From positions 248,001-312,000 of the forward strand of contig OZ025727.1 in the NCBI GenBank assembly GCA_964019335.1: a DNA stretch of 64,000 nucleotides, read 5' to 3'. Of the stretch, positions 7,488-54,787 are shown in pieces. The translations under genes were made by a program, and so were the position numbers. The notes under the pieces are model-generated. The model had not been told where the DNA came from and did no database searches. It worked only from the letters and a program-made list of their open reading frames with translations. Positions within the stretch are counted from its first letter, which is position 1. Each line of letters starts with the position of its first letter. Origin of the DNA: Diplonema japonicum. Taxonomy: Eukaryota > Protista > Euglenozoa: Diplonemea.

Positions 7488-10400
7488 ATGCATGTGCAGC
7501 TGTTGTTGGCGGTGCTGTCACTGGGGCAACTCGACCCCCCAGCGTGCAATGGGGTCTACAGCATTGACACAGCAGCTGAATCGGGTACATTGAGGTACCC
7601 TAACAGCGGGCAGTACGCTAACAATGCAGACCTCTGCTGGCGTATCAAGTCGACGAAGTGGATCCGGCTGGAGTGGGTGTCTCTGGACATCGAGGACATC
7701 ACAGAGTGTGTAAAACTTTCGGATTGCGCTTCTTCGGATCCCTGCAGTCTGACAGAGTCATGTGGCAACGACGCTCTCATCGCTTATGACACTTCGAACT
7801 TCCCAGGGATGACCTTCTGCGGGATGGCAGCAAGTAATATCATCTGGCAGCCAACTTCAAAGGGCGATGTGGTGTTCAGGTTCAAAAGCAACTCCAAAAC
7901 AACAGGACAGGGCTTCACTGTCAAATGGTCCACCTGCGAAGTGAAACCCGACACTGGCTACTCCGTGGAGAGGGCCCCTCGTTGCGGTGGGCAGATCGAA
8001 CATATCTTGACCAACCCCACAGGCACACTGAGTCACCCTGCGAAAGGCGGGGAGTATCGTACTGGTGAGAACGAATGCTGGCGGATACTCTGCAACGGAC
8101 AGCTCTCCCTCACGTGGAAGAATTTCGATTTAAGACGCGGTACTAACATCGGCTGCCATGAGGATAAGGTCACCATCTACGACAGTGAGGAAGTCGAGCA
8201 CACACTGTGCCACAAACTTGCACTCACTGTGTACCCTCCTGGTGATATCGTCATCAACTTCTTCTCTGATGTCTGTGAAGTCAGGTTTGGTTTTATCGTG
8301 TCGTGGTCGTGCGGGGCATGGGACTACCCTACCCCTCCGCAGAAGGGTACCCTTGTCGGTGCTGACTGCAGAGTTTATTCCAGTGACTTCTCCACTTCGG
8401 CTGGCAACCTTGCTTATCCCTCCACTCCTGGCTTGTACGGCAATAGTATCAAATTATGCTGGCGCATCCAGTGTGGCGGGCAGCTCACCCTCACCTATCA
8501 CGAGATGGACATTGATCTGACCACGAAGTGTTTCCGTGACCATCTTGCATTCGAGCAGCAAGGGCTTGTGCGTTCTGACTTGTACTGCGGTACAGTCCTT
8601 CCTGACTACCAGCCTCCCATAAGGGGCGACCTTGTTGTCTACTTTAGGAGTGACGGTATTAATTCGGGAGAAGGATTCAACCTGTCGTGGGTGTGTGATG
8701 ACTCACCGGACCCTCCTGCCCCATCAAACCCTGGAATGCAGCCCCCGGCAACACAGCCGCCACCTTTGACAGCCTGTCCCATACCCGCCACATCTGCACC
8801 GGATACTCTGGCACCTCCAACTGATGCACCTGCCACAGCTCCACCTACTGACCCTCCCACAACACCATTTCCACCAACGGACCCTCCCACAACTTCAGCT
8901 CCATCAACAAGTGCTCCCTTAACCCAAGCTCCACCAACTTCAGAACCGGTCAAGGACACAACCGCCCCCACGACACCACGCCCCGACACCCCAACGTTCG
9001 TCCCTGTGACTGTGGCACCCCCCACCACAGGACCGACAGCGGTGCCAACAAGGAGCCCTGGGATTGTTCCAACACCCGCCCCCCCGACAGAGACGACAGA
9101 GACCCTCAACAAGACGGGGATCGAGGAGGTTCTGACGAGCACTGGGAAGACTGTGATCCGCACAACGGACGGCGGGGTGACAGTGGTGGACAAGACTGAG
9201 GGTGGTGGTGGTGGTGGTGGGTTCGGCGGCTCGGTGACTGTCCCTGGAGGCCCTCAGACTGCGGTGAAGGTGAGCGGAAAGACTCTGGTGATGGGGTCAG
9301 CGAACGGGACCGTGTCCATCGTTGACATTGAGAAAACCCCCCCCACTGTGAAGGGGAGCTGGACGGCGACGGGGGAGGTGCGGAGCATCGCCATCGGGAG
9401 GTCCCTGCTGGCGGTGTCGGACAGTGCTGGGCTGAAGATCGTGTCCCTCCGGAACCCCGAGCTTCCCATCCTGATGGGGGAGCTGAAGGTGGGCTACATG
9501 CAGGAGATGGGGTTCACGGAGGACGCGACCTTCCTGTTCGGGGTTCCCGAGGGCTCTGGGGAGGTGCTGATGTTCGACGTGAGGGACCCGACGCGGCCCT
9601 CGCTGAAGTACAGCTTGGAGGTGAAGATCCCCGTGTCGAGCGTGAGGGTGGGAAGGGATGAGGTGTTCGTGTGCGACTCGGAAGGGCTGAAGCGCTTCAA
9701 CACGGGGACCCTGCCCCCTTCCCTCGCCCTCTCGCAACCGGGGGCGTGCGGGCTCCTTGCGGCGACACACGAGAGGCGGTACCTGTTCGTGTCGGACCCC
9801 GTGACAGGAGGGGCCGCCAATGCGAAGCGCATCACACAGTACTCCCTCGACCCCTCGTTAACAGCGGACGGGCTCCTCTTCTCAAGGGGACCTGTTCTCA
9901 GCATGGAGGTGTCGGCGGACGACCGGTACCTCTACGTTGCGGACAGCCTGGGCCTGCAGGTGTTCCCGTTGGTGCGGACGAACCCTGGGCGTCTTGACAA
10001 CCCTTTGCTGAAGTTGCTTCGATCAGTGAGGACGGGAAGGAGGGCAAACGGGGCGAAGGTTTTGGACAAGTCACAAATGGTGATTGCAGCTGACGACGAG
10101 GGGCTCAGCAGCTTCTTCAACATCTTCGACTCGAAGAACTCGGATGGGAGGAAGAAGTGGATCACTGGTGGGGCGACAGCTGTGGAGACATCTCTGGACG
10201 GACGGTGGGGTTTCTACGGGAAGGGGAGTGCTGTGACTGTGTTCGAGGTGGTGACGCTGAACACTGTGACGACTGTGGCGACACCTTCTGAGGTGCGGTC
10301 AATGACACGGTTCGCTGGTGTGCTGTACGTCACCTGCAAAGATGGTGTCTACAGCTACAGTCTGAATGACCTTCCACAGGTCTCGTTCCTATCGACGGTG

Positions 10401-12530
10401 CTGACGAACACAGTCGACGCGGTGTCCTCTTCCTCTGTGAACGGGACGCTTTGGTATGTGGCAGACGGTGCGGCAGGCCTCAAGGTTTACAACACCACCT
10501 TCTCTACCACACAACCCATCATCGCTGTTGGGACTGTGGGCGAGGTACGCAAGGTTGTTCCTTTCAAGCAGTACCTCCTTGTGGCCAATGGGGTCGATGG
10601 GCTGAAGCTGTACAAGGTTGACACAGAGTCGAGGGTTGCAGAGCTGCTTGCCCGTCTTGAGACTTCTGAAGCGATCTACGACGTTGTCCTCGAACCAGAG
10701 ACGATGAAGGGCTACATGGCGGAGGGCAGGCGGGGGGTCTCCTCCTTCAACTTCGAAATACTTGACAAGATCACTGTCACAAGCACAGTGGACCTCGTTG
10801 ACTCCGTCTTCCTTTCCCTGACTGATTACGGGGATGTTAGCTACCTACTTGTGGGGGACTCGGGCCTTCTCTCTGTTATTGAACTCATCAAGGAGGTACC
10901 GATGTATCTGGAGAGCCCGTGGCCTGAGTACGCTGTAGGGGTGGGGTTCGAGACGAAGCTGACACCGAAGGAGGTTGCGAGCAAGGAGGCGACCTCTGTG
11001 GAGGTGAAGTCGGTTGTGCGGATCGCAAGCGGTCGGGAGGCGGCTTGGCCTGAGTGGCTGGAGTACTCGGACCCCCTGCTGCTTCGGGGGACTCCTCCAA
11101 AGGAGCTGACTGGGCAGGAGGTGGTGTTGAAGTTCGCGGTGGAGCTCCCGAACGGGGCAGTTCACGAGGTCTTCTACACGCTGTCGATCGTACCGAGTCT
11201 GAAGGTTCGGAACGAGCTTGGGAAGCCACAGGTGGTGACACCGGCGAACACTGGGGTGGCGACGCTGCAGCTGGAGGTACCTCGGTCGGGAGAGTTCCTC
11301 CCGGAGCAGGGGGCTGTGTCGGTGACATCGAAACCTGTTGAAGGGAGCCTGCGGGTCTACGGTCCTGTTCCCGACCTGAACGACTTCCTGAAGGGGCTCC
11401 GGTTCGACCTGAAGGAGCCTTCGGAGAACCTGTCGAGGGTGACGCTGCTGGTGACGGACGACGTGAACCAGGGGGCTGTGCAGTACAACATCACGGTGGC
11501 GGACCTGAAGTTCAACATGCGTCCTGTTTTTGAGGGCAACAAAAACAACACCAACAACAACAACAACTGGGACCCAACAGCGACAACAGGACAAGGCTTT
11601 CGCTTCCAACTGGTTCCTATCCGGGTGTCGGACCCCGATGGGGACGCGCTGACCCTGTCTGCTGTGGAGGTGGGTCGGCAATCCCTCCCCGGGTGGCTGG
11701 AGCTGGACCCGTCTGGCTACTTCTACGGGGAAGCGACGGTGGAGGATGTGGGGACGGTTGAGATCAACCTGACGGCGAGGGACACCTACGGCGGGGAGAC
11801 GTCTCGGGTCTTCAAGCTGCGGGTGAAGCGCTCCTTCTGGGACCTGTTCTGGTACGTGTTCTCAATTGTGGCCCCGATCGTGTCTGGGCTCGGGATGCTG
11901 TACGGGGCTTGGGTGTACTACTCCCTTTTGTGGAACAACTTCGGGGGGAGGTGGTACTACTGGGAGGTCCCTCCTTCCCTGTTGTTGACCGGGGAGTGGT
12001 ACCACGCGGAGAGGAAGAAGAAGAAGAAGAAGGGGTCGAAGAAGGAGAGCAGGAGGATTGACCCGGAGAGCGTGCGAGAGATCCGGATGATGCGGCACAT
12101 CAAACACTCCCTCGGGCAGAAGGTGCGGTCCCGGCTGAGGTGGGTCCTTCCCTCGGCGTACCTCCGGCACGAGCGACAGGAACCACTGGTGAACGGCGAC
12201 AACCTCACCCCTTGGATCGAGTACAACGAGCTCGCCCACACCTTCCGCCTTCTCTACGATGAGATCGACGACGACGACGCGGGCATCTACTACCTCATCG
12301 TCTTCGGCCGCTTCGACGACATCCTCCAGGAGATCCGCCTCGAGCCCGCCGTTGTGAAGTCCCAGGAGCACAGGCTTCGCACAGCTCCGAAGGACTCTGT
12401 GAGCTTCAAGGACCTCATTGTTGAAGAGGCTGAGGTCGGGACCCCTTTGAGCCCCAATCCTTTGGGGTACAGGAGGATGTCGTTCTTGAAACCTGAAACA
12501 CAAAGTGAGGCAGACGTCCTGCTCTTGTAG
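7488..12530 (+). CDS. Family B surface protein, copy 1: 3xCUB, P/T stalk, LVIVD-like beta-propeller, cadherin/He_PIG-like Ig, TM, cytoplasmic tail
   Basis: CUB motifs (SGTLRYP..Y.NN..CWRI, FCG, FRFKS..GF) three times. PTDPP/PATAP repeats. YVADS.GLQVF, YVADGAAGLKVY, FDVRDPTRP. SDPDGDALTLSA..LPGWLELDP..G..TVEDVGTVEINLTARD. TM VFSIVAPIVSGLGMLYGAWVYY followed by a Lys run. Confidence 0.92.
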   Translation: MHVQLLLAVLSLGQLDPPACNGVYSIDTAAESGTLRYPNSGQYANNADLCWRIKSTKWIRLEWVSLDIEDITECVKLSDCASSDPCSLTESCGNDALIAYDTSNFPGMTFCGMAASNIIWQPTSKGDVVFRFKSNSKTTGQGFTVKWSTCEVKPDTGYSVERAPRCGGQIEHILTNPTGTLSHPAKGGEYRTGENECWRILCNGQLSLTWKNFDLRRGTNIGCHEDKVTIYDSEEVEHTLCHKLALTVYPPGDIVINFFSDVCEVRFGFIVSWSCGAWDYPTPPQKGTLVGADCRVYSSDFSTSAGNLAYPSTPGLYGNSIKLCWRIQCGGQLTLTYHEMDIDLTTKCFRDHLAFEQQGLVRSDLYCGTVLPDYQPPIRGDLVVYFRSDGINSGEGFNLSWVCDDSPDPPAPSNPGMQPPATQPPPLTACPIPATSAPDTLAPPTDAPATAPPTDPPTTPFPPTDPPTTSAPSTSAPLTQAPPTSEPVKDTTAPTTPRPDTPTFVPVTVAPPTTGPTAVPTRSPGIVPTPAPPTETTETLNKTGIEEVLTSTGKTVIRTTDGGVTVVDKTEGGGGGGGFGGSVTVPGGPQTAVKVSGKTLVMGSANGTVSIVDIEKTPPTVKGSWTATGEVRSIAIGRSLLAVSDSAGLKIVSLRNPELPILMGELKVGYMQEMGFTEDATFLFGVPEGSGEVLMFDVRDPTRPSLKYSLEVKIPVSSVRVGRDEVFVCDSEGLKRFNTGTLPPSLALSQPGACGLLAATHERRYLFVSDPVTGGAANAKRITQYSLDPSLTADGLLFSRGPVLSMEVSADDRYLYVADSLGLQVFPLVRTNPGRLDNPLLKLLRSVRTGRRANGAKVLDKSQMVIAADDEGLSSFFNIFDSKNSDGRKKWITGGATAVETSLDGRWGFYGKGSAVTVFEVVTLNTVTTVATPSEVRSMTRFAGVLYVTCKDGVYSYSLNDLPQVSFLSTVLTNTVDAVSSSSVNGTLWYVADGAAGLKVYNTTFSTTQPIIAVGTVGEVRKVVPFKQYLLVANGVDGLKLYKVDTESRVAELLARLETSEAIYDVVLEPETMKGYMAEGRRGVSSFNFEILDKITVTSTVDLVDSVFLSLTDYGDVSYLLVGDSGLLSVIELIKEVPMYLESPWPEYAVGVGFETKLTPKEVASKEATSVEVKSVVRIASGREAAWPEWLEYSDPLLLRGTPPKELTGQEVVLKFAVELPNGAVHEVFYTLSIVPSLKVRNELGKPQVVTPANTGVATLQLEVPRSGEFLPEQGAVSVTSKPVEGSLRVYGPVPDLNDFLKGLRFDLKEPSENLSRVTLLVTDDVNQGAVQYNITVADLKFNMRPVFEGNKNNTNNNNNWDPTATTGQGFRFQLVPIRVSDPDGDALTLSAVEVGRQSLPGWLELDPSGYFYGEATVEDVGTVEINLTARDTYGGETSRVFKLRVKRSFWDLFWYVFSIVAPIVSGLGMLYGAWVYYSLLWNNFGGRWYYWEVPPSLLLTGEWYHAERKKKKKKGSKKESRRIDPESVREIRMMRHIKHSLGQKVRSRLRWVLPSAYLRHERQEPLVNGDNLTPWIEYNELAHTFRLLYDEIDDDDAGIYYLIVFGRFDDILQEIRLEPAVVKSQEHRLRTAPKDSVSFKDLIVEEAEVGTPLSPNPLGYRRMSFLKPETQSEADVLLL

Positions 12531-20561: not shown

Positions 20562-20686
20562 GGTGGTGGGGATAACATGGAAATATAAGAAGTACATCAG
20601 ATGTGTTGTACGCTGTTGACCTCCCCGTCGGTCATCACCGGTAGCGCCCGAGTGGATGCAGATGCTCAGGGTGACGAACAGGCAGC
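20562..20686 (+). ncRNA. HDV-like self-cleaving ribozyme, family 1, complete
   Basis: P1 GGUGGUG(20562-68)/CAUCACC(20633-39). P2 GCUGUUG(20612-18)/CAGGCAGC(20679-86, one bulge). P3 ACC/GGU around L3 UCCCCGUC. P1.1 CC/GG(20640-41). P4 CGCCCGAGU/GCUCAGGGUG. J4/2 ACGAA with putative catalytic C20675. Confidence 0.82.
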
Positions 20687-20876
20687 AAACTGCACGAGCG
20701 CAGAATCTTGGTTACCCGGGGCGCCCCGGCTAGGGCTGAGTTGTACACCGCACGCATTAAGGACACAGCGCGGAACGCAGAAGAAGCTACTGCTCGGCCG
20801 AGGAGCACCCCCTGTAATCAAGTAGACTGTGCCTGCAGTTGCTTGAACGCCAGGCGGTTTATAAGCAACCAAAGTC
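20562..20876 (+). mobile_element. Ribozyme-headed short non-autonomous retroelement (SINE/SIDE-like), copy 1
   Basis: Closely similar to the 54305 copy from ribozyme G1 to CAAGTAGAC. Unique 3' hairpin at 20825-20876, then a (TTC)n/T tract. Confidence 0.78.
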
Positions 20877-21454
20877 ATTCTTCTTCTTCTTTCTTTCTTC
20901 TTTTTTTTTTTACACTACCTAGCTCCCTAAATGACAAGGAGGTAAGCGGTGAGAATGGTCATTCTGCAAAACCGTTTCAAATAAGTAAGAAGGGGCGATA
21001 GGTGTTTCTGGTTTTATTTATTTTATTTATTTATCCACGTTTCTTTCCAAGCACAGCGCAAAATATTCTTTTGATATATTCTTTTTGTTGTTTTCGTCCA
21101 TTCAACACCACCCACGTTGTCACACAGAGAATCACACACAAAAAAGCACCACCTCGAGAGGTGTCTTACAGCGGGCGCCATCTGGAAGCATGTCCACAAG
21201 CAACGAGCTGACCTGATAGGTGCGGCTGACTGCTTCTTCGTGGGCCGTAGACAGGTATCCACGAGGCACCGAAGTTACTGGACAGCACTCGTATGACCTG
21301 TACAGTCACGGTACTGTCTTTCGACAGCAGAACATTCACCCCACTACGGACAGCCGCCTTCGTCGACAGGTTCCACATGTTCACCTCGACCTGCCCTGCG
21401 TTCTCGTAGGTGTCTTGTGGAGCGAAGTTCAGATCCAGCGTCGTCGGTAAGTAC

Positions 21455-25261: not shown

Positions 25262-25369
25262 GGTGGTGGGGATAACATGAAAATATTTGAGAAAAATATC
25301 AGATGTGTTCGCTGTTGACCTCCTCGTCGGTCATCACCGGTAGCGCCCGAGTAGAAGATCATAATGCAG
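25262..25369 (+). mobile_element. 3'-truncated ribozyme-headed element (HDV-like family 1, lacks J4/2 and the 3' strand of P2)
   Basis: GGTGGTGGGGATAACATG...GACCTCCTCGTCGGTCATCACCGGTAGCGCCCGAGT; homology ends in the P4 loop. Confidence 0.78.
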
Positions 25370-25550
25370 GCTTCAAGTGGGATGCCCTAACGTCGTTTTT
25401 TTTTTCTTTTCGTTTTCTCATCAAAACACCAGATACCAATAGGGGTGTTTTTCTATTCGTTATTACTGTTTCGATGCAATACTGCTTTTACTGATTCTTT
25501 TTGAATTTGAATTTTTTTTTGGGGGGGGTTTTTTTTTGTTGCTGACCCTC

Positions 25551-30168: not shown

Positions 30169-30792
30169 TAATGGTAGCATGCAGTATTTATCTCAGGATT
30201 TATATTGCGAACAAGTGCTAAAACCTGACTCTTCCCTCCTTTTTATTTTGTGTAGTCCGGACGGAGCAACAATGCAACAAATTCACAAGGTGAAAACCCC
30301 CCTTTTCTTAACGTGTGTTTGAAGGAAGGGGATTCTGGTAAAAAGAGTTGCATGCCTTGCACACTGTCATGCCTTCTGCTTTTAAGTATTGGTGGTAAAC
30401 ACAGTGTGAAATTAAGGGGAACTGAAAAGGAGTACAAAAAGTGTATTAAAAAAAAAAAAAAAAAAAGTGCCAAAAAAGAAAACGTCTGAGTGGTGTTAAA
30501 TTTATTTTGAAGCAACAACGAAACACCCCCCCCCCCCCCCCCCCGCACTTTCCTTTCCAGCTCGGACAAGGCCCCCCCTCTCTCCATCCATGCCTTTCTT
30601 TGCAAGGTACCTGCTGGACGATTCTGTATTCCTTTTTTTTCTCTTGTTTCTCTTTTTTTTTTTATCTTTTTCTTTTTTTTTTTTTTTCTCCTTGTAATTG
30701 TGAGGAAATACCAACAGACAAAAGGGATACTGGGAGGGTGTGTGTGTGTGGTGTGGGGGAAGGGGGGGAGAAAAAAAAATAGTGTTCAAAAA

Positions 30793-33700
30793 ATGTATAT
30801 ACAACTATTACTGGCAGTGTTGTCCCTGTCACAGTTAGACCCCCCAGAATGCGGTGGTGTGTACAACCTGGACACAACGGCAACATCAGGTACAGTTCGA
30901 TATCCCTTCAGCGGGCAGTATGAGAACAACGTGGGCAGCTACTGCTGGAGGATTAAATCTACGAAATGGATCCACCTCACCTGGAAAACAGTGGACATCG
31001 AGGACTACGCCGAGTGTGCAAGAGTACTGCCCTGCGGTTACGGGTCATGCCCCTACCTGTTCCAGCAGCACACCTGCGACAATGACGCTCTCATTATGTT
31101 CGATTCTTCCGGCGATGCTGGCATGGAAATCTGCGGGATGAACGCTCAAAACATACTCTGGCAGCCCTCCGTAGCCGGTGACATCGTCTTCAGATTTCGC
31201 AGCGACGGTGACACAGTTGGGTTGGGGTTCAATGTTCAGTTCTCCACCTGCGATGTGAAACCGGACACCGGCTTCGCTGTTAAAAAGGCACCACGTTGCC
31301 AGTCACAAATCAACAATGTAACTACAGACCTCACCGGTACACTGAAATACCCAGAGACGGGGAATTACGACGGTGCGGTGAGTACCTGCTGGAGAATACT
31401 CTGCAACGGTCAGCTGACCCTCACGTGGAAGAAAGTCGATTTGGACACATCTGGCATCGGGTGCAACCACGACAGAATCACCATCTACGACACAGAGGAG
31501 ATCGGGCACACATTGTGCAGTGTCCCCATCGATCCCATGGTGTATCCTCCCGGAGAACTCGTCATCCACTTTGGTTCTGATGTCTGTGCACACAAATCAG
31601 GGTTCGAAGTCGATTGGTCGTGCGGGGCATGGAACTACCCTTCCCCTCCGCAGAAAGGAAGCCTTATTGCATCCGACTGCAACATCTACACGAAAGATTT
31701 TTCGGACTCAACTGGCTACCTCGCACACCCGGACACACTAAACACACAATACGGGCCAAATGAACATTTCTGTTGGCGTATTCAATGTGGCGGCCAGCTC
31801 ACTCTCACCTTCCACGAGCTTGAGATTGAAAATGTTTCCGGTTCAAGTCCGTACTGCTCCGACCATCTCATGTTCGAGCAGGACATGCTTGTCAGATCTG
31901 AGTACATCTGTGGTGAGGTAGGAATCCTCCCAGACTACCAGCCGCCTAAGAGGGGTGACCTTGGTATTCACTTCGTCAGCGACACGAATTCCAACCTTGG
32001 AGGGTTCAACTTCTCATGGGTCTGTGACAACTCACCGGACCCTCCTGCGCCTTCGGATCCTGGAATGCAGCCTCAGGCAACGTTGCCCCCTCCTGTGACT
32101 TGTTATGTTCCAACCAATGCCCCGCCAACAGATGCGCCCACAGCAGTGCCGATGACAGCGACGCCAACTACAGCGCCTGATACCATGCCCCCTGATACAG
32201 CTATGCCGCCTGGTTCTACGTTGTCACCAGCAACACCTTCCCCTGACACTTCAGCTCCATCAACAAGTGCTCCTTTAACCCAAGCTCCACCAACTTCAGA
32301 ACCGGGAGCCGCCCCCACGACACCACGCCCCGACACCCCAACGTTCGTCCCTGTGACTGTGGCACCCCCCACCACAGGACCGACAGCGGTGCCAACAAGG
32401 AGCCCTGGGATTGTTCCGACACCTGCCCCCCCGACAGAGACGACAGAGACCCTCAACAAGACGGGGATCGAGGAGGTTCTGACGAGCACTGGGAAGACTG
32501 TGATTCGCACAACGGACGGCGGGGTGACAGTGGTGGACAAGACTGAGGGTGGTGGTGGTGGTGGTGGGTTCGGCGGCTCGGTGACTGTCCCTGGAGGCCC
32601 TCAGACTGCGGTGAAGGTGAGCGGAAAGACTCTGGTGATGGGGTCAGCGAACGGGACCGTGTCCATCGTTGACATTGAGAAAACCCCCCCCACTGTGAAG
32701 GGGAGCTGGACGGCGACGGGGGAGGTGCGGAGCATCGCCATCGGGAGGTCCCTGCTGGCGGTGTCGGACAGTGCTGGGCTGAAGATCGTGTCCCTCCGAA
32801 ACCCCGAGCTTCCCATCCTGATGGGGGAGCTGAAGGTGGGCTACATGCAGGAGATGGGGTTCACGGAGGACGCGACCTTCCTGTTCGGGGTTCCCGAGGG
32901 CTCTGGGGAGGTGCTGATGTTCGACGTGAGGGACCCGACGCGGCCCTCGCTGAAGTACAGCTTGGAGGTGAAGATCCCCGTGTCGAGCGTGAGGGTGGGA
33001 AGGGATGAGGTGTTCGTGTGCGACTCGGAAGGGCTGAAGCGCTTCAACACGGGGACCCTGCCCCCTTCCCTCGCCCTCTCGCAACCGGGGGCGTGCGGGC
33101 TCCTTGCGGCGACACACGAGAGGCGGTACCTGTTCGTGTCGGACCCCGTGACAGGAGGGGCCGCCAATGCGAAGCGCATCACACAGTACTCCCTCGACCC
33201 CTCGTTAACAGCGGACGGGCTCCTCTTCTCAAGGGGACCTGTTCTCAGCATGGAGGTGTCGGCGGACGACCGGTACCTCTACGTTGCGGACAGCCTGGGC
33301 CTGCAGGTGTTCCCGTTGGTGCGGACGAACCCTGGGCGCCTCGACAACCCTTTACTAAAGCTGGAAGGTACAGTCCGTACAGGGACGAAAGCAAATGGGA
33401 TGAAGGTTTTGGACAAGTCACAAATGGTGATTGCAGCTGACGACGAGGGGCTCAGCAGCTTCTTCAACATCTTCGACTCGAAGAACTCGGATGGGAGGAA
33501 GAAGTGGATCACTGGTGGGGCGACAGCTGTGGAGACATCTCTGGACGGACGGTGGGGTTTCTACGGGAAGGGGAGTGCTGTGACTGTGTTCGAGGTGGTG
33601 ACGCTGAACACTGTGACGACTGTGGCGACACCTTCTGAGGTGCGGTCGATGGCATTGTACGCTAATATACTGTACGTCACCTGCATAGATGGTGTCTACA

Positions 33701-35865
33701 GCTACAGTCTGAATGACCTTCCACAGGTCTCGTTCCTATCGACGGTGCTGACGAACACTGTCGACGCGGTGTCCTCTTCTTCTGTGAACAGGACGCTTTG
33801 GTATGTGGCAGACGGTCGGGCGGGCGTTAAAGTTTACAACACAACCATCTCCACCACACAACCCATCATCGCTACCAACACAGTGGGTGAGATACGCAAG
33901 GTTGTTCCTTTCAAGCAGTACCTCCTTGCGGCAGATGGGGTCGATGGGCTGAAGCTGTACAAGGTTGACACAGAGTCGAGGGTTGCAGAGCTGCTTGCCC
34001 GTCTTGAGACTTCTGAAGCGATCTACGACATTGTCCTCGAACCAGAGACGATGAAGGGCTACATAGCTGAAGGCAGGCGGGGGGTCTCCTCCTTCAACTG
34101 CGGAACACTTGACAAGATCACTGTCACAAGCACAGTGGACCTCGTTGACTCCGTCTTCCTTTCCCTGACTGAGTACAGTGGCTCTGGGTACATCCTTGCT
34201 GGGGACAGAACTGGCCTTCTCTCTGTTATTGAACTCATCAAGGAGGTACCGATGTACCTGGAGAGCCCGTGGCCTGAGTACGCTGTAGGGGTGGGGTTCG
34301 AGACGAAGCTGACACCGAAGGAGGTTGCGAGCAGGGAGGCGACCTCTGTGGAGGTGAGGTCGGTTGTGCGGATCGCAAGCGGTCGGGAGGCGGCTTGGCC
34401 TGAGTGGCTGGAGTACTCGGACCCCCTGCTGCTTCGGGGGACTCCTCCAAAGGAGCTGACTGGGCAGGAGGTGGTGTTGAAGTTCGCGGTGGAGCTCCCG
34501 AACGGGGCAGTTCACGAGGTCTTCTACACGCTGTCGATCGTACCGAGTCTGAAGGTTCGGAACGAGCTTGGGAAGCCGCAGGTGGTGACACCGGCGAACA
34601 CTGGGGTGGCGACGCTGCAGCTGGAGGCACCTCGGTCAGGGGAGTTCCTCCCGGAGCAGGGGGCTGTGTCGGTGACATCGAAACCTGTTGAAGGGAGCCT
34701 GCGGGTCTACGGTCCTGTTCCCGACCTGAACGACTTCCTGAAGGGGCTCCGGTTCGACCTGAAGGAGCCTTCGGAGAACCTGTCGAGGGTGACGCTGCTG
34801 GTGACGGACGACGTGAACCAGGGGGCTGTGCAGTACAACATCACGGTGGCGGACCTGAAGTTCAACATGCGTCCTGTTTTTGAGGGCAACAAAAACAACA
34901 CCAACAACAACAACAACTGGGACCCAACAGCGACAACAGGACAAGGCTTTCGCTTCCAACTGGTTCCTATCCGGGTGTCGGACCCCGATGGGGACGCGCT
35001 GACCCTGTCTGCTGTGGAGGTGGGTCGGCAATCCCTCCCCGGGTGGCTGGAGCTGGACCCGTCTGGCTACTTCTACGGGGAAGCAACGGTGGAGGATGTG
35101 GGGACGGTTGAGATCAACTTGACGGCGAGGGACACCTACGGCGGGGAGACGTCTCGGGTCTTCAAGCTGCGGGTGAAGCGCTCCTTCTGGGACCTGTTCT
35201 GGTACGTGTTCTCAATTGTGGCCCCGATCGTGTCTGGGCTCGGGATGCTGTACGGGGCTTGGGTGTACTACTCCCTTTTGTGGAACAACTTCGGGGGGAG
35301 GTGGTACTACTGGGAGGTCCCTCCTTCCCTGTTGTTGACCGGGGAGTGGTACCATGCGGAGAGGAAGAAGAAGAAGAAGGAGAGCAGGAGGATTGACCCG
35401 GAGAGCGTGCGAGAGATCCGGATGATGCGGCACATCAAACACTCCCTCGGGCAGAAGGTGCGGTCCCGGCTGAGGTGGGTCCTTCCCTCGGCGTACCTCC
35501 GGCACGAGCGACAAGAACCACTGGTGAACGGCGACAACCTCACCCCTTGGATCGAATACAACGAGCTCGCCCACACCTTCCGCCTTCTCTACGATGAGAT
35601 CGACGACGACGACGCGGGCATCTACTACCTCATCGTCTTCGGCCGCTTCGACGACATCCTCCAGGAGATCCGCCTCGAGCCCGCCGTTGTGAAGTCCCAG
35701 GAGCACAGGCTTCGCACGGCAGAGAAGGCGTCTGTGAGCTTCAAGGACCTCCTCGAAGAGGCTGAGGTCGAGACCCCTTTGAGTCCCAACCCTTTGGGGT
35801 ACAGGAAGATGTCGTGCTCTTTGAATCCTGAAGCACAAAGTGAGGCAGACGTCCTGCTCTTGTAG
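30793..35865 (+). CDS. Family B surface protein, copy 2 (most divergent CUB head)
   Basis: Start MYIQLLLAVLSL at 30793 by homology; same architecture as 7488..12530. Confidence 0.92.
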   Translation: MYIQLLLAVLSLSQLDPPECGGVYNLDTTATSGTVRYPFSGQYENNVGSYCWRIKSTKWIHLTWKTVDIEDYAECARVLPCGYGSCPYLFQQHTCDNDALIMFDSSGDAGMEICGMNAQNILWQPSVAGDIVFRFRSDGDTVGLGFNVQFSTCDVKPDTGFAVKKAPRCQSQINNVTTDLTGTLKYPETGNYDGAVSTCWRILCNGQLTLTWKKVDLDTSGIGCNHDRITIYDTEEIGHTLCSVPIDPMVYPPGELVIHFGSDVCAHKSGFEVDWSCGAWNYPSPPQKGSLIASDCNIYTKDFSDSTGYLAHPDTLNTQYGPNEHFCWRIQCGGQLTLTFHELEIENVSGSSPYCSDHLMFEQDMLVRSEYICGEVGILPDYQPPKRGDLGIHFVSDTNSNLGGFNFSWVCDNSPDPPAPSDPGMQPQATLPPPVTCYVPTNAPPTDAPTAVPMTATPTTAPDTMPPDTAMPPGSTLSPATPSPDTSAPSTSAPLTQAPPTSEPGAAPTTPRPDTPTFVPVTVAPPTTGPTAVPTRSPGIVPTPAPPTETTETLNKTGIEEVLTSTGKTVIRTTDGGVTVVDKTEGGGGGGGFGGSVTVPGGPQTAVKVSGKTLVMGSANGTVSIVDIEKTPPTVKGSWTATGEVRSIAIGRSLLAVSDSAGLKIVSLRNPELPILMGELKVGYMQEMGFTEDATFLFGVPEGSGEVLMFDVRDPTRPSLKYSLEVKIPVSSVRVGRDEVFVCDSEGLKRFNTGTLPPSLALSQPGACGLLAATHERRYLFVSDPVTGGAANAKRITQYSLDPSLTADGLLFSRGPVLSMEVSADDRYLYVADSLGLQVFPLVRTNPGRLDNPLLKLEGTVRTGTKANGMKVLDKSQMVIAADDEGLSSFFNIFDSKNSDGRKKWITGGATAVETSLDGRWGFYGKGSAVTVFEVVTLNTVTTVATPSEVRSMALYANILYVTCIDGVYSYSLNDLPQVSFLSTVLTNTVDAVSSSSVNRTLWYVADGRAGVKVYNTTISTTQPIIATNTVGEIRKVVPFKQYLLAADGVDGLKLYKVDTESRVAELLARLETSEAIYDIVLEPETMKGYIAEGRRGVSSFNCGTLDKITVTSTVDLVDSVFLSLTEYSGSGYILAGDRTGLLSVIELIKEVPMYLESPWPEYAVGVGFETKLTPKEVASREATSVEVRSVVRIASGREAAWPEWLEYSDPLLLRGTPPKELTGQEVVLKFAVELPNGAVHEVFYTLSIVPSLKVRNELGKPQVVTPANTGVATLQLEAPRSGEFLPEQGAVSVTSKPVEGSLRVYGPVPDLNDFLKGLRFDLKEPSENLSRVTLLVTDDVNQGAVQYNITVADLKFNMRPVFEGNKNNTNNNNNWDPTATTGQGFRFQLVPIRVSDPDGDALTLSAVEVGRQSLPGWLELDPSGYFYGEATVEDVGTVEINLTARDTYGGETSRVFKLRVKRSFWDLFWYVFSIVAPIVSGLGMLYGAWVYYSLLWNNFGGRWYYWEVPPSLLLTGEWYHAERKKKKKESRRIDPESVREIRMMRHIKHSLGQKVRSRLRWVLPSAYLRHERQEPLVNGDNLTPWIEYNELAHTFRLLYDEIDDDDAGIYYLIVFGRFDDILQEIRLEPAVVKSQEHRLRTAEKASVSFKDLLEEAEVETPLSPNPLGYRKMSCSLNPEAQSEADVLLL

Positions 35866-38756: not shown

Positions 38757-39061
38757 GAAGGTGAAAGGAAGGAGGGCCTTCCCAGCTGAGCCGAGCACAA
38801 GGGTGCACACACTACGATCCATCGGGAAGACAAAGGCGGTGATCGGATGGAACAGGAGGGCGATATTTGCATCACCGAAGACCAAGCATGACCTAGAGGC
38901 GTTGAAAGGACAAAGGGCAAGAGAACGAAGAGAAAAAGCGGCCAGGCTGGGGAGAAGGCCGGCAAGACCACCAAAGGAGGAGAAGCCTCTGCTGAAAGGG
39001 GATAGGTGCAGGTAGAGGATGAGAACAAGGGGGCGTCTCACAAAGACTTCCTTTAACTCAT
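38757..39061 (+). mobile_element. 5'-truncated LINE 3' end, subfamily A
   Basis: KVKGRRAFPAEP...PLLKGDRCR*. 3' hairpin 39019-39061 is identical to 401-443. Confidence 0.8.
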
Positions 39062-39145
39062 ATATTTTTTTTTCCACTTCTTTTTCTTTCCTTTTTTGCA
39101 GTTTGCTGCTTTGTAGTTCAAACCAAACAGGTTCTCTCCCCTCAT

Positions 39146-42100
39146 ATGTATGTGCAGCTGTTGTTGACTGTGCTGTCACTGGGGCAGCTCAACCCCTCAA
39201 AGTGCAGGGGGGTCTACAGGAGAGACGCAGCAGCTGAATCGGGCACATTGAAGTACCCTAACTCCGGCAATAACTACCCGAACAATGCAGACTACTGCTG
39301 GCGTATCAAGTCGACGAAGTGGATCCGGCTGGAGTGGGTGTCTTTGGACATCGAGGACATCACCGAGTGTGTAAAGGCTGACAGCTGCGGTTTCAATCCT
39401 CCCTGCACTCAGCATTCAGCATGTAGCGACGCTCTCATCGCTTATGACACTTCGAACTTGTCAGGGATGACCTTCTGCGGGATGGCAGCAAGTAATATCA
39501 TCTGGCAGCCCACCTCAAAGGGTGATGTGGTGTTCAGGTTCGTCAGCGGCCCCAAAACAACAGGACAGGGCTTCACTATCAAATGGTCCACCTGCGAAGC
39601 GAAACCCGACACTGGCTACTCCATAAAGATGGCCCCTCGTTGCGGTGGGCAGATCAAAAATATCTTGACCAACCCCACAGGCACACTGAAGCATCCTGTG
39701 ACTGGGAAATATGATCATGGTGAGAACATATGCTGGCGGATACTCTGCAACGGACAGCTCTCCCTCACGTGGAAGGCTGTTGATGTAAAAAGCAACACTG
39801 ACATCGGCTGCAATAAAGACAAGGTCACCATCTACGACAGTGAAGAAACTGAACACACACTGTGCAGAATGCCTCTCGATCCTATTGAGTACCCTCCTGG
39901 TGAGATCGTCATCAGCTTCTTCTCTGATGTCTGTGATAACGGTAATGGCTTTGAGGTGTCGTGGTCGTGCGGGGCATGGGACTACCCTACCCCTCCGCAG
40001 AAGGGTACCCTTGTCGGTGTTGACTGCAACGCTTATTCCAGTGACTTCTCCACTTCGGCTGGCAACCTTGCTTATCCCTCCACTCCTGGCTTGTACGGCA
40101 ATAATATCAAATTATGCTGGCGCATCCAGTGTGGCGGGCAGCTCACCCTCACCTATCACGAGATGGATCTTGATGATGGCGTGAATTGTGATAACGACCA
40201 TCTTGCATTCGAGCAGCAAGGGCTTGTGCGTTCTAACTTGTACTGCGGTACAGCTATTCCTGACTACCAGCCTCCCATAAGGGGCGACCTTGTTGTCTAC
40301 TTCAGAAGTGACAGTTCGCAGCAAAAACAAGGATTCAACCTGTCGTGGGTGTGCGATGACTCACCGGACCCTCCTGCCCCATCAAACCCTGGAATGCAGC
40401 CCCCGGCAACACAGCCGCCACCTTTGACAGCCTGTCCCATACCCGCCACATCTGCACCGGATACTCTGGCTCCAACTGATGCACCTGCAACCCCAGCCCC
40501 TGCCACAGCTCCACCAACAGACCCTCCCACAACACCATTTCCACCAACAGACCCTCCCACAACACCAGCTCCAGCAACAGGCCTTCCTGCAACCCCAGCT
40601 CCAGCAACAAGTGCTCCTTTAACCCAAGCTCCACCAACTTCAGAACCAGGCACTCCAGACACAGCCGCCCCCACGACACCACGCCCCGACACCCCAACGT
40701 TCGTCCCTGTGACTGTGGCACCCCCCACCACAGGACCGACAGCGGTGCCAACAAGGAGCCCTGGGATTGTTCCAACACCCGCCCCCCCGACAGAGACGAC
40801 AGAGACCCTCAACAAGACGGGGATCGAGGAGGTTCTGACGAGCACTGGGAAGACTGTGATTCGCACAACGGACGGCGGGGTGACAGTGGTGGACAAGACT
40901 GAGGGTGGTGGTGGTGGTGGTGGGTTCGGCGGCTCGGTGACTGTCCCTGGAGGCCCTCAGACTGCGGTGAAGGTGAGCGGAAAGACTCTGGTGACGGGGT
41001 CAGCGAACGGGACCGTGTCCATCGTTGACATTGAGAAAACCCCCCCCACTGTGAAGGGGAGCTGGACGGCGACGGGGGAGGTGCGGAGCATCGCCATCGG
41101 GAGGTCCCTGCTGGCGGTGTCGGACAGTGCTGGGCTGAAGATCGTGTCCCTCCGAAACCCCGAGCTTCCCATCCTGATGGGGGAGCTGAAGGTGGGCTAC
41201 ATGCAGGAGATGGGGTTCACGGAGGACGCGACCTTCCTGTTCGGGGTTCCCGAGGGCTCTGGGGAGGTGCTGATGTTCGACGTGAGGGACCCGACGCGGC
41301 CCTCGCTGAAGTACAGCTTGGAGGTGAAGATCCCCGTGTCGAGCGTGAGGGTGGGAAGGGATGAGGTGTTCGTGTGCGACTCGGAAGGGCTGAAGCGCTT
41401 CAACACGGGGACCCTGCCCCCTTCCCTCGCCCTCTCGCAACCGGGGGCGTGCGGGCTCCTTGCGGCGACACACGAGAGGCGGTACCTGTTCGTGTCGGAC
41501 CCCGTGACAGGAGGGGCCGCCAATGCGAAGCGCATCACACAGTACTCCCTCGACCCCTCGTTAACAGCGGACGGGCTCCTCTTCTCAAGGGGACCTGTTC
41601 TCAGCATGGAGGTGTCGGCGGACGACCGGTACCTCTACGTTGCGGACAGCCTGGGCCTGCAGGTGTTCCCGTTGGTGCGGACGAACCCTGGGCGCCTCGA
41701 CAACCCTTTGCTGAAGTTGGTTCGGACTGTGCAAACAGGAAGGAGGACAAACGGGGCGAAGGTCTTGGACAAGTCACAAATGGTGGTCGCAGCTGACGAC
41801 GAGGGGCTCAGCAGCTTCTTCAACATCTTCGACTCGAAGAACTCGGATGGGAGGAAGAAGTGGATCACTGGTGGGGCGACAGCTGTGGAGACATCTCTGG
41901 ACGGACGATGGGGTTTCTACGGGAAGGGGAGTGCTGTGACTGTGTTCGAGGTGGTGACGCTGAACACTGTGACGACTGTGGCGACACCTTCTGAGGTGCG
42001 GTCAATGACACGGTTCGCTGGTGTGCTGTACGTCACCTGCAAAGATGGTGTCTACAGCTACAGTCTGAATGACCTTCCGAAGGTCTCGTTCCTATCGACG

Positions 42101-44215
42101 GTGCTGACGAACACTGTCGACGCGGTGTCCTCTTCCTCTGTGAACGGGACGCTTTGGTATGTGGCAGACGGTGCGGCAGGCTTCAAGGTTTACAACACTA
42201 CTTTCTCCACCACACAACCCATCATCGCTGTTGGGACTGTGAGTAAGGTTTACAAGGTTGTTCCTTTCAAGCAGTACCTCCTTGTGGCCAATTGGGTCGA
42301 TGGGCTGAAGCTGTACAAGGTTGACACAGAGTCGAGGGTTGCAGAGCTGCTTGCCCGTCTTGAGACTTCTGAAGCGATCTACGACGTTGTCCTCGAACCA
42401 GAGACGATGAAGGGCTACATGGCGGAGGGCAGGCGGGGGATCTCTTCCTTCAACTTCGGTACACTTGACAAGATCACTGTCACAAGCACAGTGGACCTCG
42501 TTGACTCCGTCTTCCTTTCCCTGACTGAGTACAGTGGCTCTGGGTACATCCTTGCTGGGGACAGAACTGGCCTTCTCTCTGTTATTGAACTCATCAAGGA
42601 GGTACCGATGTACCTGGAGAGCCCGTGGCCTGAGTACGCTGTAGGGGTGGGGTTCGAGACGAAGCTGACACCGAAGGAGGTTGCGAGCAGGGAGGCGACC
42701 TCTGTGGAGGTGAGGTCGGTTGTGCGGATCGCAAGCGGTCGGGAGGCGGCTTGGCCTGAGTGGCTGGAGTACTCGGACCCCCTGCTGCTTCGGGGGACTC
42801 CTCCAAAGGAGCTGACTGGGCAGGAGGTGGTGTTGAAGTTCGCGGTGGAGCTCCCGAACGGGGCAGTTCACGAGGTCTTCTACACGCTGTCGATCGTACC
42901 GAGTCTGAAGGTTCGGAACGAGCTTGGGAAGCCGCAGGTGGTGACACCGGCGAACACTGGGGTGGCGACGCTGCAGCTGGAGGCACCTCGGTCAGGGGAG
43001 TTCCTCCCGGAGCAGGGGGCTGTGTCGGTGACATCGAAACCTGTTGAAGGGAGCCTGCGGGTCTACGGTCCTGTTCCCGACCTGAACGACTTCCTGAAGG
43101 GGCTCCGGTTCGACCTGAAGGAGCCTTCGGAGAACCTGTCGAGGGTGACGCTGCTGGTGACGGACGACGTGAACCAGGGGGCTGTGCAGTACAACATCAC
43201 GGTGGCGGACCTGAAGTTCAACATGCGTCCTGTTTTTGAGGGCAACAAAAACAACACCAACAACAACAACAACTGGGACCCAACAGCGACAACAGGACAA
43301 GGCTTTCGCTTCCAACTGGTTCCTATCCGGGTGTCGGACCCCGATGGGGACGCGCTGACCCTGTCTGCTGTGGAGGTGGGTCGGCAATCCCTCCCCGGGT
43401 GGCTGGAGCTGGACCCGTCTGGCTACTTCTACGGGGAAGCAACGGTGGAGGATGTGGGGACGGTTGAGATCAACTTGACGGCGAGGGACACCTACGGCGG
43501 GGAGACGTCTCGGGTCTTCAAGCTGCGGGTGAAGCGCTCCTTCTGGGACCTGTTCTGGTACGTGTTCTCAATTGTGGCCCCGATCGTGTCTGGGCTCGGG
43601 ATGCTGTACGGGGCTTGGGTGTACTACTCCCTTTTGTGGAACAACTTCGGGGGGAGGTGGTACTACTGGGAGGTCCCTCCTTCCCTGTTGTTGACCGGGG
43701 AGTGGTACCATGCGGAGAGGAAGAAGAAGAAGAAGGAGAGCAGGAGGATTGACCCGGAGAGCGTGCGAGAGATCCGGATGATGCGGCACATCAAACACTC
43801 CCTCGGGCAGAAGGTGCGGTCCCGGCTGAGGTGGGTCCTTCCCTCGGCGTACCTCCGGCACGAGCGACAAGAACCACTGGTGAACGGCGACAACCTCACC
43901 CCTTGGATCGAATACAACGAGCTCGCCCACACCTTCCGCCTTCTCTACGATGAGATCGACGACGACGACGCGGGCATCTACTACCTCATCGTCTTCGGCC
44001 GCTTCGACGACATCCTCCAGGAGATCCGCCTCGAGCCCGCCGTTGTGAAGTCCCAGGAGCACAGGCTTCGCACGGCAGAGAAGGCGTCTGTGAGCTTCAA
44101 GGACCTCCTCGAAGAGGCTGAGGTCGAGACCCCTTTGAGTCCCAACCCTTTGGGGTACAGGAGGATGTCGTTCTTGAAACCTGAAGCACAAAGTGAGGCA
44201 GACGTGCTCTTGTAG
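39146..44215 (+). CDS. Family B surface protein, copy 3
   Basis: Same architecture as 7488..12530. Confidence 0.92.
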   Translation: MYVQLLLTVLSLGQLNPSKCRGVYRRDAAAESGTLKYPNSGNNYPNNADYCWRIKSTKWIRLEWVSLDIEDITECVKADSCGFNPPCTQHSACSDALIAYDTSNLSGMTFCGMAASNIIWQPTSKGDVVFRFVSGPKTTGQGFTIKWSTCEAKPDTGYSIKMAPRCGGQIKNILTNPTGTLKHPVTGKYDHGENICWRILCNGQLSLTWKAVDVKSNTDIGCNKDKVTIYDSEETEHTLCRMPLDPIEYPPGEIVISFFSDVCDNGNGFEVSWSCGAWDYPTPPQKGTLVGVDCNAYSSDFSTSAGNLAYPSTPGLYGNNIKLCWRIQCGGQLTLTYHEMDLDDGVNCDNDHLAFEQQGLVRSNLYCGTAIPDYQPPIRGDLVVYFRSDSSQQKQGFNLSWVCDDSPDPPAPSNPGMQPPATQPPPLTACPIPATSAPDTLAPTDAPATPAPATAPPTDPPTTPFPPTDPPTTPAPATGLPATPAPATSAPLTQAPPTSEPGTPDTAAPTTPRPDTPTFVPVTVAPPTTGPTAVPTRSPGIVPTPAPPTETTETLNKTGIEEVLTSTGKTVIRTTDGGVTVVDKTEGGGGGGGFGGSVTVPGGPQTAVKVSGKTLVTGSANGTVSIVDIEKTPPTVKGSWTATGEVRSIAIGRSLLAVSDSAGLKIVSLRNPELPILMGELKVGYMQEMGFTEDATFLFGVPEGSGEVLMFDVRDPTRPSLKYSLEVKIPVSSVRVGRDEVFVCDSEGLKRFNTGTLPPSLALSQPGACGLLAATHERRYLFVSDPVTGGAANAKRITQYSLDPSLTADGLLFSRGPVLSMEVSADDRYLYVADSLGLQVFPLVRTNPGRLDNPLLKLVRTVQTGRRTNGAKVLDKSQMVVAADDEGLSSFFNIFDSKNSDGRKKWITGGATAVETSLDGRWGFYGKGSAVTVFEVVTLNTVTTVATPSEVRSMTRFAGVLYVTCKDGVYSYSLNDLPKVSFLSTVLTNTVDAVSSSSVNGTLWYVADGAAGFKVYNTTFSTTQPIIAVGTVSKVYKVVPFKQYLLVANWVDGLKLYKVDTESRVAELLARLETSEAIYDVVLEPETMKGYMAEGRRGISSFNFGTLDKITVTSTVDLVDSVFLSLTEYSGSGYILAGDRTGLLSVIELIKEVPMYLESPWPEYAVGVGFETKLTPKEVASREATSVEVRSVVRIASGREAAWPEWLEYSDPLLLRGTPPKELTGQEVVLKFAVELPNGAVHEVFYTLSIVPSLKVRNELGKPQVVTPANTGVATLQLEAPRSGEFLPEQGAVSVTSKPVEGSLRVYGPVPDLNDFLKGLRFDLKEPSENLSRVTLLVTDDVNQGAVQYNITVADLKFNMRPVFEGNKNNTNNNNNWDPTATTGQGFRFQLVPIRVSDPDGDALTLSAVEVGRQSLPGWLELDPSGYFYGEATVEDVGTVEINLTARDTYGGETSRVFKLRVKRSFWDLFWYVFSIVAPIVSGLGMLYGAWVYYSLLWNNFGGRWYYWEVPPSLLLTGEWYHAERKKKKKESRRIDPESVREIRMMRHIKHSLGQKVRSRLRWVLPSAYLRHERQEPLVNGDNLTPWIEYNELAHTFRLLYDEIDDDDAGIYYLIVFGRFDDILQEIRLEPAVVKSQEHRLRTAEKASVSFKDLLEEAEVETPLSPNPLGYRRMSFLKPEAQSEADVLL

Positions 44216-45290: not shown

Positions 45291-45436
45291 GGCTGGGCGG
45301 GACACAAACGACAAGAATATGAACGCGCAACAGGCAACGGCAGAGGAAGCCGCGCAGCGTGTCTCGTGTACTCCTCCACGTGGCCCCAGCTGGATCTCGT
45401 ATGTGTGAAAACAAAATTCCCCCGGGGTTGCGTACA
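45291..45436 (+). ncRNA. HDV-like ribozyme, family 2, probably decayed
   Basis: P1 GGCUGGG(45291-97)/CCCAGCU(45385-91) with G1-U wobble. J1/2 stem CGGGACAC/GUGUCUCG. P2 UGUAC(45367-71)/GUACA(45432-36). P3 UCC/GGC with one mismatch. L3 UCCACGU. GG at 45392-93. P4 AUCUCG/CGGGGU. J4/2 is only UGC. Confidence 0.6.
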
Positions 45437-54304: not shown

Positions 54305-54438
54305 GGTGGTGGGGATAACATGAAAATATAAGAAAAACATCAGATGTGTTGTTCGTTGTTGACCTCCTCGTCGGTCATCACCGGTAGCACCCGAGTGGAA
54401 GAACGTAACGCAGATGCTCAGGGTGACGAACAGGCAGC
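54305..54438 (+). ncRNA. HDV-like self-cleaving ribozyme, family 1, complete
   Basis: P1 GGUGGUG(54305-11)/CAUCACC(54376-82). ACC-UCCUCGUC-GGU (54362-75). GG at 54383-84. P4 CACCCGAGU/GCUCAGGGUG with a longer loop. J4/2 ACGAA (C54427). P2 GUUGUUG/CAGGCAGC. Confidence 0.82.
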
Positions 54439-54628
54439 AAACTGCACGAGCGCAGAATCTTGGTTACCCGGGACGCCCCGGCTGGGGTTGAGCTATACAC
54501 CGCACGCATTAAGGACACGACGCGGAACGCAGAAGAAGCTACAACTCGGCCGCGGTGCGCCCCCTGTAATCAAGTAGACAGTTCTTGTGCAGGGCGCCGC
54601 CAACACCGGCCTCCTTTAACTCATATAT
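54305..54628 (+). mobile_element. Ribozyme-headed short non-autonomous retroelement, copy 2
   Basis: Body matches 20562-20827. The tail ends TCCTTTAACTCATATATA, like LINE subfamily A. Confidence 0.78.
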
Positions 54629-54629
54629 A

Positions 54630-54787
54630 TTTTATTTCATTCCTTCTGAAATTACTTCACTATTTATGGACTACTTTTACAAGCTTACCAAGCTCCCCAA
54701 AAGACTCGTGCGACTGGCCGCGCCTTAGTTAACAAACATCTTTTACCGCCTTGTTGTGAAGTAATTTCAGGAAGTCGTGAAATAAAA
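54630..54787. mobile_element. MITE-like element with ~31-bp imperfect terminal inverted repeats
   Basis: TTTTATTTCATTCCTTCTGAAATTACTTCAC (54630-54660) versus GTGAAGTAATTTCAGGAAGTCGTGAAATAAAA (54756-54787). Confidence 0.6.

Follow-up and report, generated by a model that had tools for sequence, protein, structure and literature searches.

A short dispersed element, present as three plus-strand copies (beginning at 20562, 25262, and 54305) in a 64-kb stretch of Diplonema japonicum contig OZ025727.1 (positions 248,001 to 312,000 of the forward strand; hereafter, the window), is very probably a non-autonomous, promoter-less retroposon of the type lacking long terminal repeats (non-LTR), namely a short interspersed element (SINE), in which the first 125 nt make up a hepatitis delta virus (HDV)-like self-cleaving ribozyme that would trim host read-through RNA. 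The family displays the HDV-type fold with covariation, an exact 5′ boundary at the predicted cleavage site, a defined RNA sense, copying primed from the 3′ end, insertion into T tracts, and a bias toward the sense strand; most likely, the fold would serve to cut the element free of long host transcripts.

Both complete copies, 20562–20686 and 54305–54438, could be threaded onto the HDV fold (Table 1). P1, P2, P3, P1.1, and P4 occur in the sequence canonical for this fold, cleavage is predicted at the 5′ base of P1, and every component listed in a sequence-only reading of the window was found in its place, including the candidate catalytic C at 20675 and at 54427. P1 comprises 7 bp, one of them G.U, between 20562–20568 and 20633–20639, and P1.1 is formed by the CC of L3 with the GG at 20640–20641. 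L3 contains the U...G of the reverse-wobble positions and the two C that pair with the GG after P1 (UCCYCGUC then GG; UCCCCGUC in the 20562 copy and UCCUCGUC in the 54305 copy, a C/U difference), and J4/2 presents a C followed by purines (ACGAACA; C-N-R-A in five families), for which a catalytic role is a candidate function. The catalytic stretch of HDV itself is C75-G-A-A. The element retains this CGAA in J4/2 and the HDV U, CC, and G positions in L3. As had been claimed from the letters alone, the differences between the two complete copies either preserve pairing (G.U to A-U in P4; C-G to U.G in P2) or fall in loops, and the 9-nt indel between them lies in the P4 loop. The peripheral hairpin of J1/2 varies across the family, reading GUACA/UGUAC in the 20562 copy, GUACA/UGUUC with one U.U mismatch in the majority, and AAACA/UGUUC with A-U restored in others. 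Missing from the third copy are J4/2, the 3′ strand of P2, and half of P4 (its 3′ side), and thus a complete ribozyme cannot form there. Comparison within the window bore out that the likeness of the three copies starts at the predicted scissile bond, beginning at GGTGGTG, with unrelated sequence upstream of each.

The chance level of this match was estimated with an HDV descriptor, a kind of scan proposed with the sequence-only reading. The descriptor specified a 7-bp P1, a 5–8-bp P2, a 3-bp P3, GG directly after P1, a P4 stem, a J4/2 with C-N-R-A, and an L3 of 7 to 9 nt (strict) or 7/8 nt (relaxed) with CC at positions 2–3. Across both strands of the window, the strict version matched only 20562–20686 and the relaxed version added just 54305, with no further match on either strand. 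On 5 Mb of first-order Markov sequence of genome composition, the strict version gave 4 matches and the relaxed version 21; by chance, the strict descriptor matches about 0.8 times per Mb per strand, or approximately once per million positions. Given this low rate and a match that starts at the first base of a repeat, the coincidence is not due to chance. One other place in the window, 45292–45436, has a 7-bp P1 (GGCUGGG/CCCAGCU, with a G.U) followed by GG and a UCC loop; its P3 is irregular, 2 extra nt precede the 3′ strand of P1, and it was rejected by the descriptor.

The element belongs to a large family. With up to 3 mismatches allowed, a search of the 62.5-Mb genome assembly (132 contigs) yielded 746 matches for the 27-nt core spanning P3, L3, and the 3′ strand of P1 and 814 for the first 27 nt of the element, with 0 matches to either reversed-pattern control; the SINE is thus present in at least 746–814 copies (about 800). 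Boundaries were assessed in 50 distinct copies from the retrieved loci. The sequence-only reading had staked its case on a common start genome-wide, and 46 of the 50 inspected copies indeed begin exactly at the first base, G1; in two, 3 or 6 nt are missing. The full element is ∼320 nt long and consists of the ribozyme, a shared body, one 3′ module, and a pyrimidine tail. At least three (three or four) unrelated 3′ modules alternate, each folding as a hairpin, and the tails comprise 6–53 pyrimidines, mostly T. The 20 nt upstream of the copies are 66% T, compared with a 27% background. With regard to target-site duplications, the sequence on either side of the copies is T-rich, and no paralogous site lacking the insertion came to light.

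Incomplete copies reveal the direction of copying. Copies truncated at the 5′ side, starting at nt 126 and at nt 190, retain the 3′ end, and it is likewise kept in many solo copies that comprise the final 44 nt of module a; the plus strand is thus the RNA sense, and reverse transcription proceeds from the T-tail end. The opposite-strand reading, in which the element would end in CCACCACC and an A run, was ruled out, since it is the T-tail end that survives in truncated copies and solo tails. Short, non-coding, and dispersed in many copies, with a fixed 5′ end and 5′-truncated copies that retain the 3′ end, the family has the attributes of a SINE. At six retrieved loci (L055–L060), solo tails made up of these 44 nt (hairpin plus CCAAAGTCATTCTTCTT) lie within T-rich tracts; on contig C63, a 2516-nt tandem repeat has one such tail per unit.

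The same architecture recurs elsewhere in the genome. A core pattern that excludes the 3′ strand of the SINE's own P1 (ACCTCC-N4-5-GGT-D-N6-GG) gave 261 genome matches compared with 49 for the control, and the matches group into recurring families; 20 examples were retrieved, and at least five further retroelement families (F1–F5) headed by an HDV-like core were found at loci L074–L094 on contigs C1, C2, C6, C7, C8, C11, C12, C14, C23, C25, C27, and C28. Four families thread completely, each with its own complementary P1 and P2 (P1 5′ strands GGGGACC in F1, which is compact at 76 nt, AGGGGTC in F2, CAGGGGG in F4, and GGTGGGA in F5), and another, F3, has one mismatch inside P1, its core lying 3.6–4.3 kb upstream of the reverse transcriptase domains of long interspersed elements (LINEs) with 2036–2134-aa frames. 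The fold starts directly after a T-rich flank in F1, F4, and F5; F2 copies are without one, the sole exception being L080, with a short T run nearby. Invariant in five families are ACC/GGU of P3, UCCnnG in L3, the GG, and C-N-R-A. F5 heads a second short element of ∼535 nt, SINE-like and with a T tail, and its loops and junctions are clearly homologous to those of the SINE ribozyme.

Covariation was tested across these lineages. A covariance model built from seven SINE copies only, with P1, P3, and P4 as its structure, found F5 end to end at E about 5e-6 and F2 at E 0.014–0.08; a MAFFT alignment of the SINE with F5 misplaced P1, and the covariance-model alignment was therefore used instead. 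In the model-built alignment of the SINE, F5, and F2, with P2 and P1.1 added, 93.5% of alignment cells pair, compared with 82.8% in 500 shuffles (reached by 0/500); both sides have changed in 9 of 28 pairs (1/500 shuffles), and the covariation score is 0.358, compared with 0.169 in shuffles (0/500). When the partners were slid by 1–3 columns, pairing fell to 26–45%. P2, which lies outside the model's structure, still shows 2 double changes, one of them running from C-G in most SINE copies through U.G in the 54305 copy to U-A in F5, and P1.1 is C-G in 8 of 8 distinct rows. Compensatory change is thus seen among about three lineages, in an alignment fitted to P1, P3, and P4.

Two loci (L095 and L096) contain older relatives that are alike over the first ∼80 nt and from which P1.1, P4, J4/2, and part of P2 are deleted; both carry many CG-to-TG/CA changes, and L096 also has internal tandem repeats of the body. 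An element at L006:880–993 follows a T run and starts with GGGGGCGGAGGTAACATGGATATATAAGAAGTAC, resembling the J1/2 of the SINE; the SINE model matches it at E about 1e-3, and no HDV core is recognizable in it.

The orientation of the copies follows large strand domains, i.e., the gene strand. The longest flanking open reading frame (ORF) has the same orientation as the element in 24 loci and the reverse one in 6, and the strand switches in only 10 of 76 neighboring same-contig pairs among the first 100 copies listed (counted by eye). Within the window, all long ORFs are on the plus strand, as are the three copies. In four of the 50 copies (L003, L012, L017, and L027), a 38-nt sequence, itself preceded by a T run, is fused exactly to G1. 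This sequence ends in CAGTTTCTGTACTTTATTG, its first bases differ among copies, and in one locus (L045), a gene-like copy, it is followed by GT. Its last 19 nt equal the 3′ end of the Leishmania spliced leader, and the whole is 2 nt from the ‘Euglenozoa 14’ leader (PMC3795323); these matches identify the host as a trans-splicing euglenozoan. In Diplonema papillatum, genes are arranged in unidirectional clusters, the leader is 39 nt long, and 28S fragments are scattered in their thousands (PMC10161547), features that fit the observations made here. Most simply, the leader-fused copies arose by reverse transcription of uncleaved RNAs to which the leader had been trans-spliced at an AG immediately upstream of G1, and the fusion of the leader to G1 marks G1 as an RNA-level junction.

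Three other explanations of the exact 5′ end or of the fold were considered. In the first, transcription starts at G1, either from an internal promoter, as proposed for Pr77 of L1Tc, or by RNA polymerase III (Pol III) with the 3′ T run as terminator, and the fold is a relic or has another role. The terminal T run does resemble a Pol III terminator, and the same 77 nt of L1Tc have been reported as both promoter and ribozyme (PMC3383444), with both roles together being compatible with the data here; however, a promoter does not demand core positions that are invariant in five families with differing helices, the long-frame elements that also begin with the core in T tracts are not Pol III templates, and orientation tracks the gene strand, as expected if the elements depend on read-through transcription. 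We regard a promoter-made end without cleavage as improbable. Less probable still is that spliced-leader trans-splicing at an AG before G1 sets the end with no ribozyme involved, despite the leader exons joined to G1 and the polypyrimidine tracts that make up the upstream flanks: ends made by splicing would leave the leader on daughter copies, yet about 90% are without it, G1 directly follows AG in only 1 of 30 copies, the usual dinucleotide at that place being AA or TA, and trans-splicing leaves the conserved fold and covariation unexplained. Finally, a fortuitous HDV resemblance within a repeat, which the missing Rfam match for the SINE and the non-significant folding z-score (both below) might suggest, is scarcely credible beside a descriptor chance rate of about 1e-6 per position with the match at the repeat's exact first base, the same architecture in other families of the genome, and covariation that is lost in the slid controls.

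Several observations weigh against a self-cleaving ribozyme at the head of the SINE. In the SINE and in F5, P1 opens with a G1-C pair rather than G.U (F1 has G.U, F2 A-U, and F4 C-G); a G.U pair at this position is common, though not universal, among HDV-like ribozymes. An unpaired G intervenes between P2 and P3. The minimum free energy fold of the 125 nt recovers P1 and P4 and is no more stable than shuffled sequence (z = +0.92), a result that is expected of a pseudoknot and hence uninformative. The match to Rfam HDV models that the sequence-only reading had looked for failed to appear, with none on either complete SINE copy at E up to 10, and a scan of the whole window at gathering scores returned no HDV model; three Rfam HDV-family models match F2, F4, and F5 on the right strand and in the right place, at sub-threshold scores (E 0.27–9; 15.7–22.5 bits compared with gathering scores of 37–50). 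The SINE family itself varies little, so that the covariation rests on about three lineages, and the alignment that displays it was fitted to three of the helices. The leader upstream of G1 in 4 of 50 copies implies that cleavage, if it occurs at all, is not always complete. Lastly, when the genome was searched for a partner LINE using 3′ modules a and b, nothing other than SINE copies and solo tails was retrieved.

That last result bears on one part of the original proposal: the description of the family as SINE/SIDE-like holds for the SINE, but the short internally deleted element (SIDE) part found no support, because no parent LINE with the same ribozyme or 3′ module was found. One complete LINE was examined; it ends in a T run, and its tail is unlike the SINE modules. 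At L073 (C52:154700–164600), LINEs are arranged head-to-tail with a period of 7661 nt; each unit has 1040-aa and 1429-aa frames in the same reading frame with one stop codon between them and ends in a T run, and no HDV core was recognized at its start.

On balance, the notion of a ribozyme-headed SINE family is upheld by the 5′ boundary, the invariant core, covariation, truncated copies, and strand bias. The claim that the element “excises itself” went too far, as the ribozyme could make the 5′ end only. A cycle can be proposed from these features. Copies lying sense in unidirectional gene clusters would be transcribed within long host read-through transcripts, and the ribozyme would cut just 5′ of G1, giving a defined RNA 5′ end without host sequence. 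A LINE reverse transcriptase may then recognize the 3′ hairpin module and U-rich tail, and, where a poly(T) tract lies on the sense strand, the tail could pair with the A-rich strand opposite and so permit target-primed reverse transcription. The new copy would return to the sense orientation, ready to be co-transcribed again. More tentatively, the genome may house an entire retroelement system that uses neither promoters nor poly(A), in which U-rich tails prime on sense poly(T), all new LINE and SINE copies land sense in polycistronic units, and every 5′ end is made by one of a diversified set of HDV-like ribozymes, which compete with spliced-leader trans-splicing for the same nucleotide; such competition is suggested by the leader-fused retrocopies.

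Table 1. Features of the ribozyme-headed element and its copies in the 64-kb window (window coordinates).
Feature	Position	Strand	Remark
P1 5′ strand GGUGGUG; predicted cleavage directly 5′ of G20562	20562..20568	+	first base in 46/50 copies
Expanded J1/2, 43 nt	20569..20611	+	peripheral hairpin 20592–20596 with 20607–20611
P2 5′ strand GCUGUU	20612..20617	+	followed by one unpaired G at 20618
P3 ACC/GGU around L3 UCCCCGUC	20619..20632	+	CC 20623–20624 is the P1.1 partner
P1 3′ strand CAUCACC, then P1.1 GG	20633..20641	+	GG at 20640–20641
P4, CGCCC/GGGUG plus GAG/CUC with bulged A	20645..20673	+	9-nt indel of other subfamilies in loop
J4/2 ACGAACA	20674..20680	+	candidate catalytic C at 20675
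P2 3′ strand GGCAGC	20681..20686	+	
Non-coding body	20687..20823	+	common to all subfamilies
3′ module a, hairpin	20824..20876	+	one of at least three interchangeable 3′ modules; last 44 nt also found solo
T-rich (pyrimidine) tail of first copy	20877..20911	+	
Third copy, T run at end	25262..25410	+	5′ end, P1, P3, L3, and P1.1 intact
Ribozyme of second complete copy	54305..54438	+	subfamily with 3′ module c; candidate catalytic C 54427
Second copy, body and 3′ module c	54439..54632	+	then short T-rich end

The SINE copies sit 116–334 nt past the stop codons of neighboring window genes. The window also encodes five paralogues of a ∼1700-aa protein (7488–12530, 30700–35865, 39146–44215, 48906–53990, and 58218–63305); the one that was scanned, 7488–12530, has a CUB domain and a He_PIG Ig-like domain. 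Another dispersed element, at 1–456 and 38757–39073, shares the terminal motif of SINE module c (CCTTTAACTCATATAT plus a T run). At 2427–2950, a 5′-truncated SINE copy has its middle replaced by a 373-nt antisense piece of 28S rRNA (2468–2840) that is 100% identical to the ribosomal DNA (rDNA) array on contig C119, and further 28S pieces are scattered through the genome. Derivation of the SINE body from antisense 28S rRNA was ruled out, as the 28S piece sits in one 5′-truncated copy, which is a chimera and not an ancestor.

If the fold cleaves as predicted, the range of ribozyme-headed retroposons would widen from trypanosomatids and animals to include a euglenozoan whose spliced leader is not of the trypanosomatid type; among the papers searched, none dealt with ribozymes in bodonid or diplonemid retroelements. 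The genome would also offer a natural set of about five HDV-like ribozyme families that share one core and differ in their helices, useful for structure-function work, as well as a testable model of how promoter-less elements stay in transcribed orientation. The roughly 800 predicted sense-strand self-cleaving sites in or near 3′ untranslated regions could affect host mRNA stability.

Among known systems, a close parallel is the L1TcRz/Pr77 ribozyme, which in trypanosomatids heads L1Tc and the non-autonomous elements related to it, NARTc, RIME, and SIDER (PMC3185411, PMC4035085, PMC3383444). In both cases, the host is a polycistronic, trans-splicing euglenozoan whose LINEs and short non-autonomous elements start with an HDV-like ribozyme, element RNA is released from co-transcripts (a prediction here), and many copies are dispersed near or inside gene clusters. 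In contrast to the 77-nt Pr77, the ribozyme here spans 125 nt with a 43-nt J1/2 insert; the tails are T-rich rather than poly(A) and the insertions are in poly(T) tracts, the host spliced leader is not trypanosomatid, and several ribozyme families with different helices coexist in one genome. No similarity to the Pr77 hallmark, a conserved 77–79-nt signature at the 5′ end of elements of the L1Tc/ingi clade, was recognized, though no alignment was run and this is no test of their likeness. In comparison with genomic HDV and Rfam families RF00094, RF02682, and RF01787, the order of P1, P2, P3, L3, P1.1, P4, and J4/2 is the same, as are L3 UCCYCG, J4/2 CGAA, and a P1.1 of two C-G pairs, whereas the first P1 pair is G-C instead of G.U, J1/2 is long, and a G is unpaired between P2 and P3. 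R2 and the R2 SIDEs of Drosophila likewise have a 5′ HDV-like ribozyme that makes an exact 5′ end from a host co-transcript, as predicted here, and in R2 a 3′ structure is required for protein binding and target-primed reverse transcription (PMC3414825, PMC3774820). Non-autonomous derivatives that retain both ends are a further point in common; however, R2 is site-specific for 28S rDNA whereas the copies here are dispersed, and with no parent LINE sharing the same ends, the term ‘internally deleted’ is unsupported for this family. By analogy, then, the predicted logic of the element is that of L1Tc, NARTc, RIME, and SIDER (PMC3185411, PMC4035085) and of R2 and its SIDEs (PMC3414825), and elements of this kind are already known.
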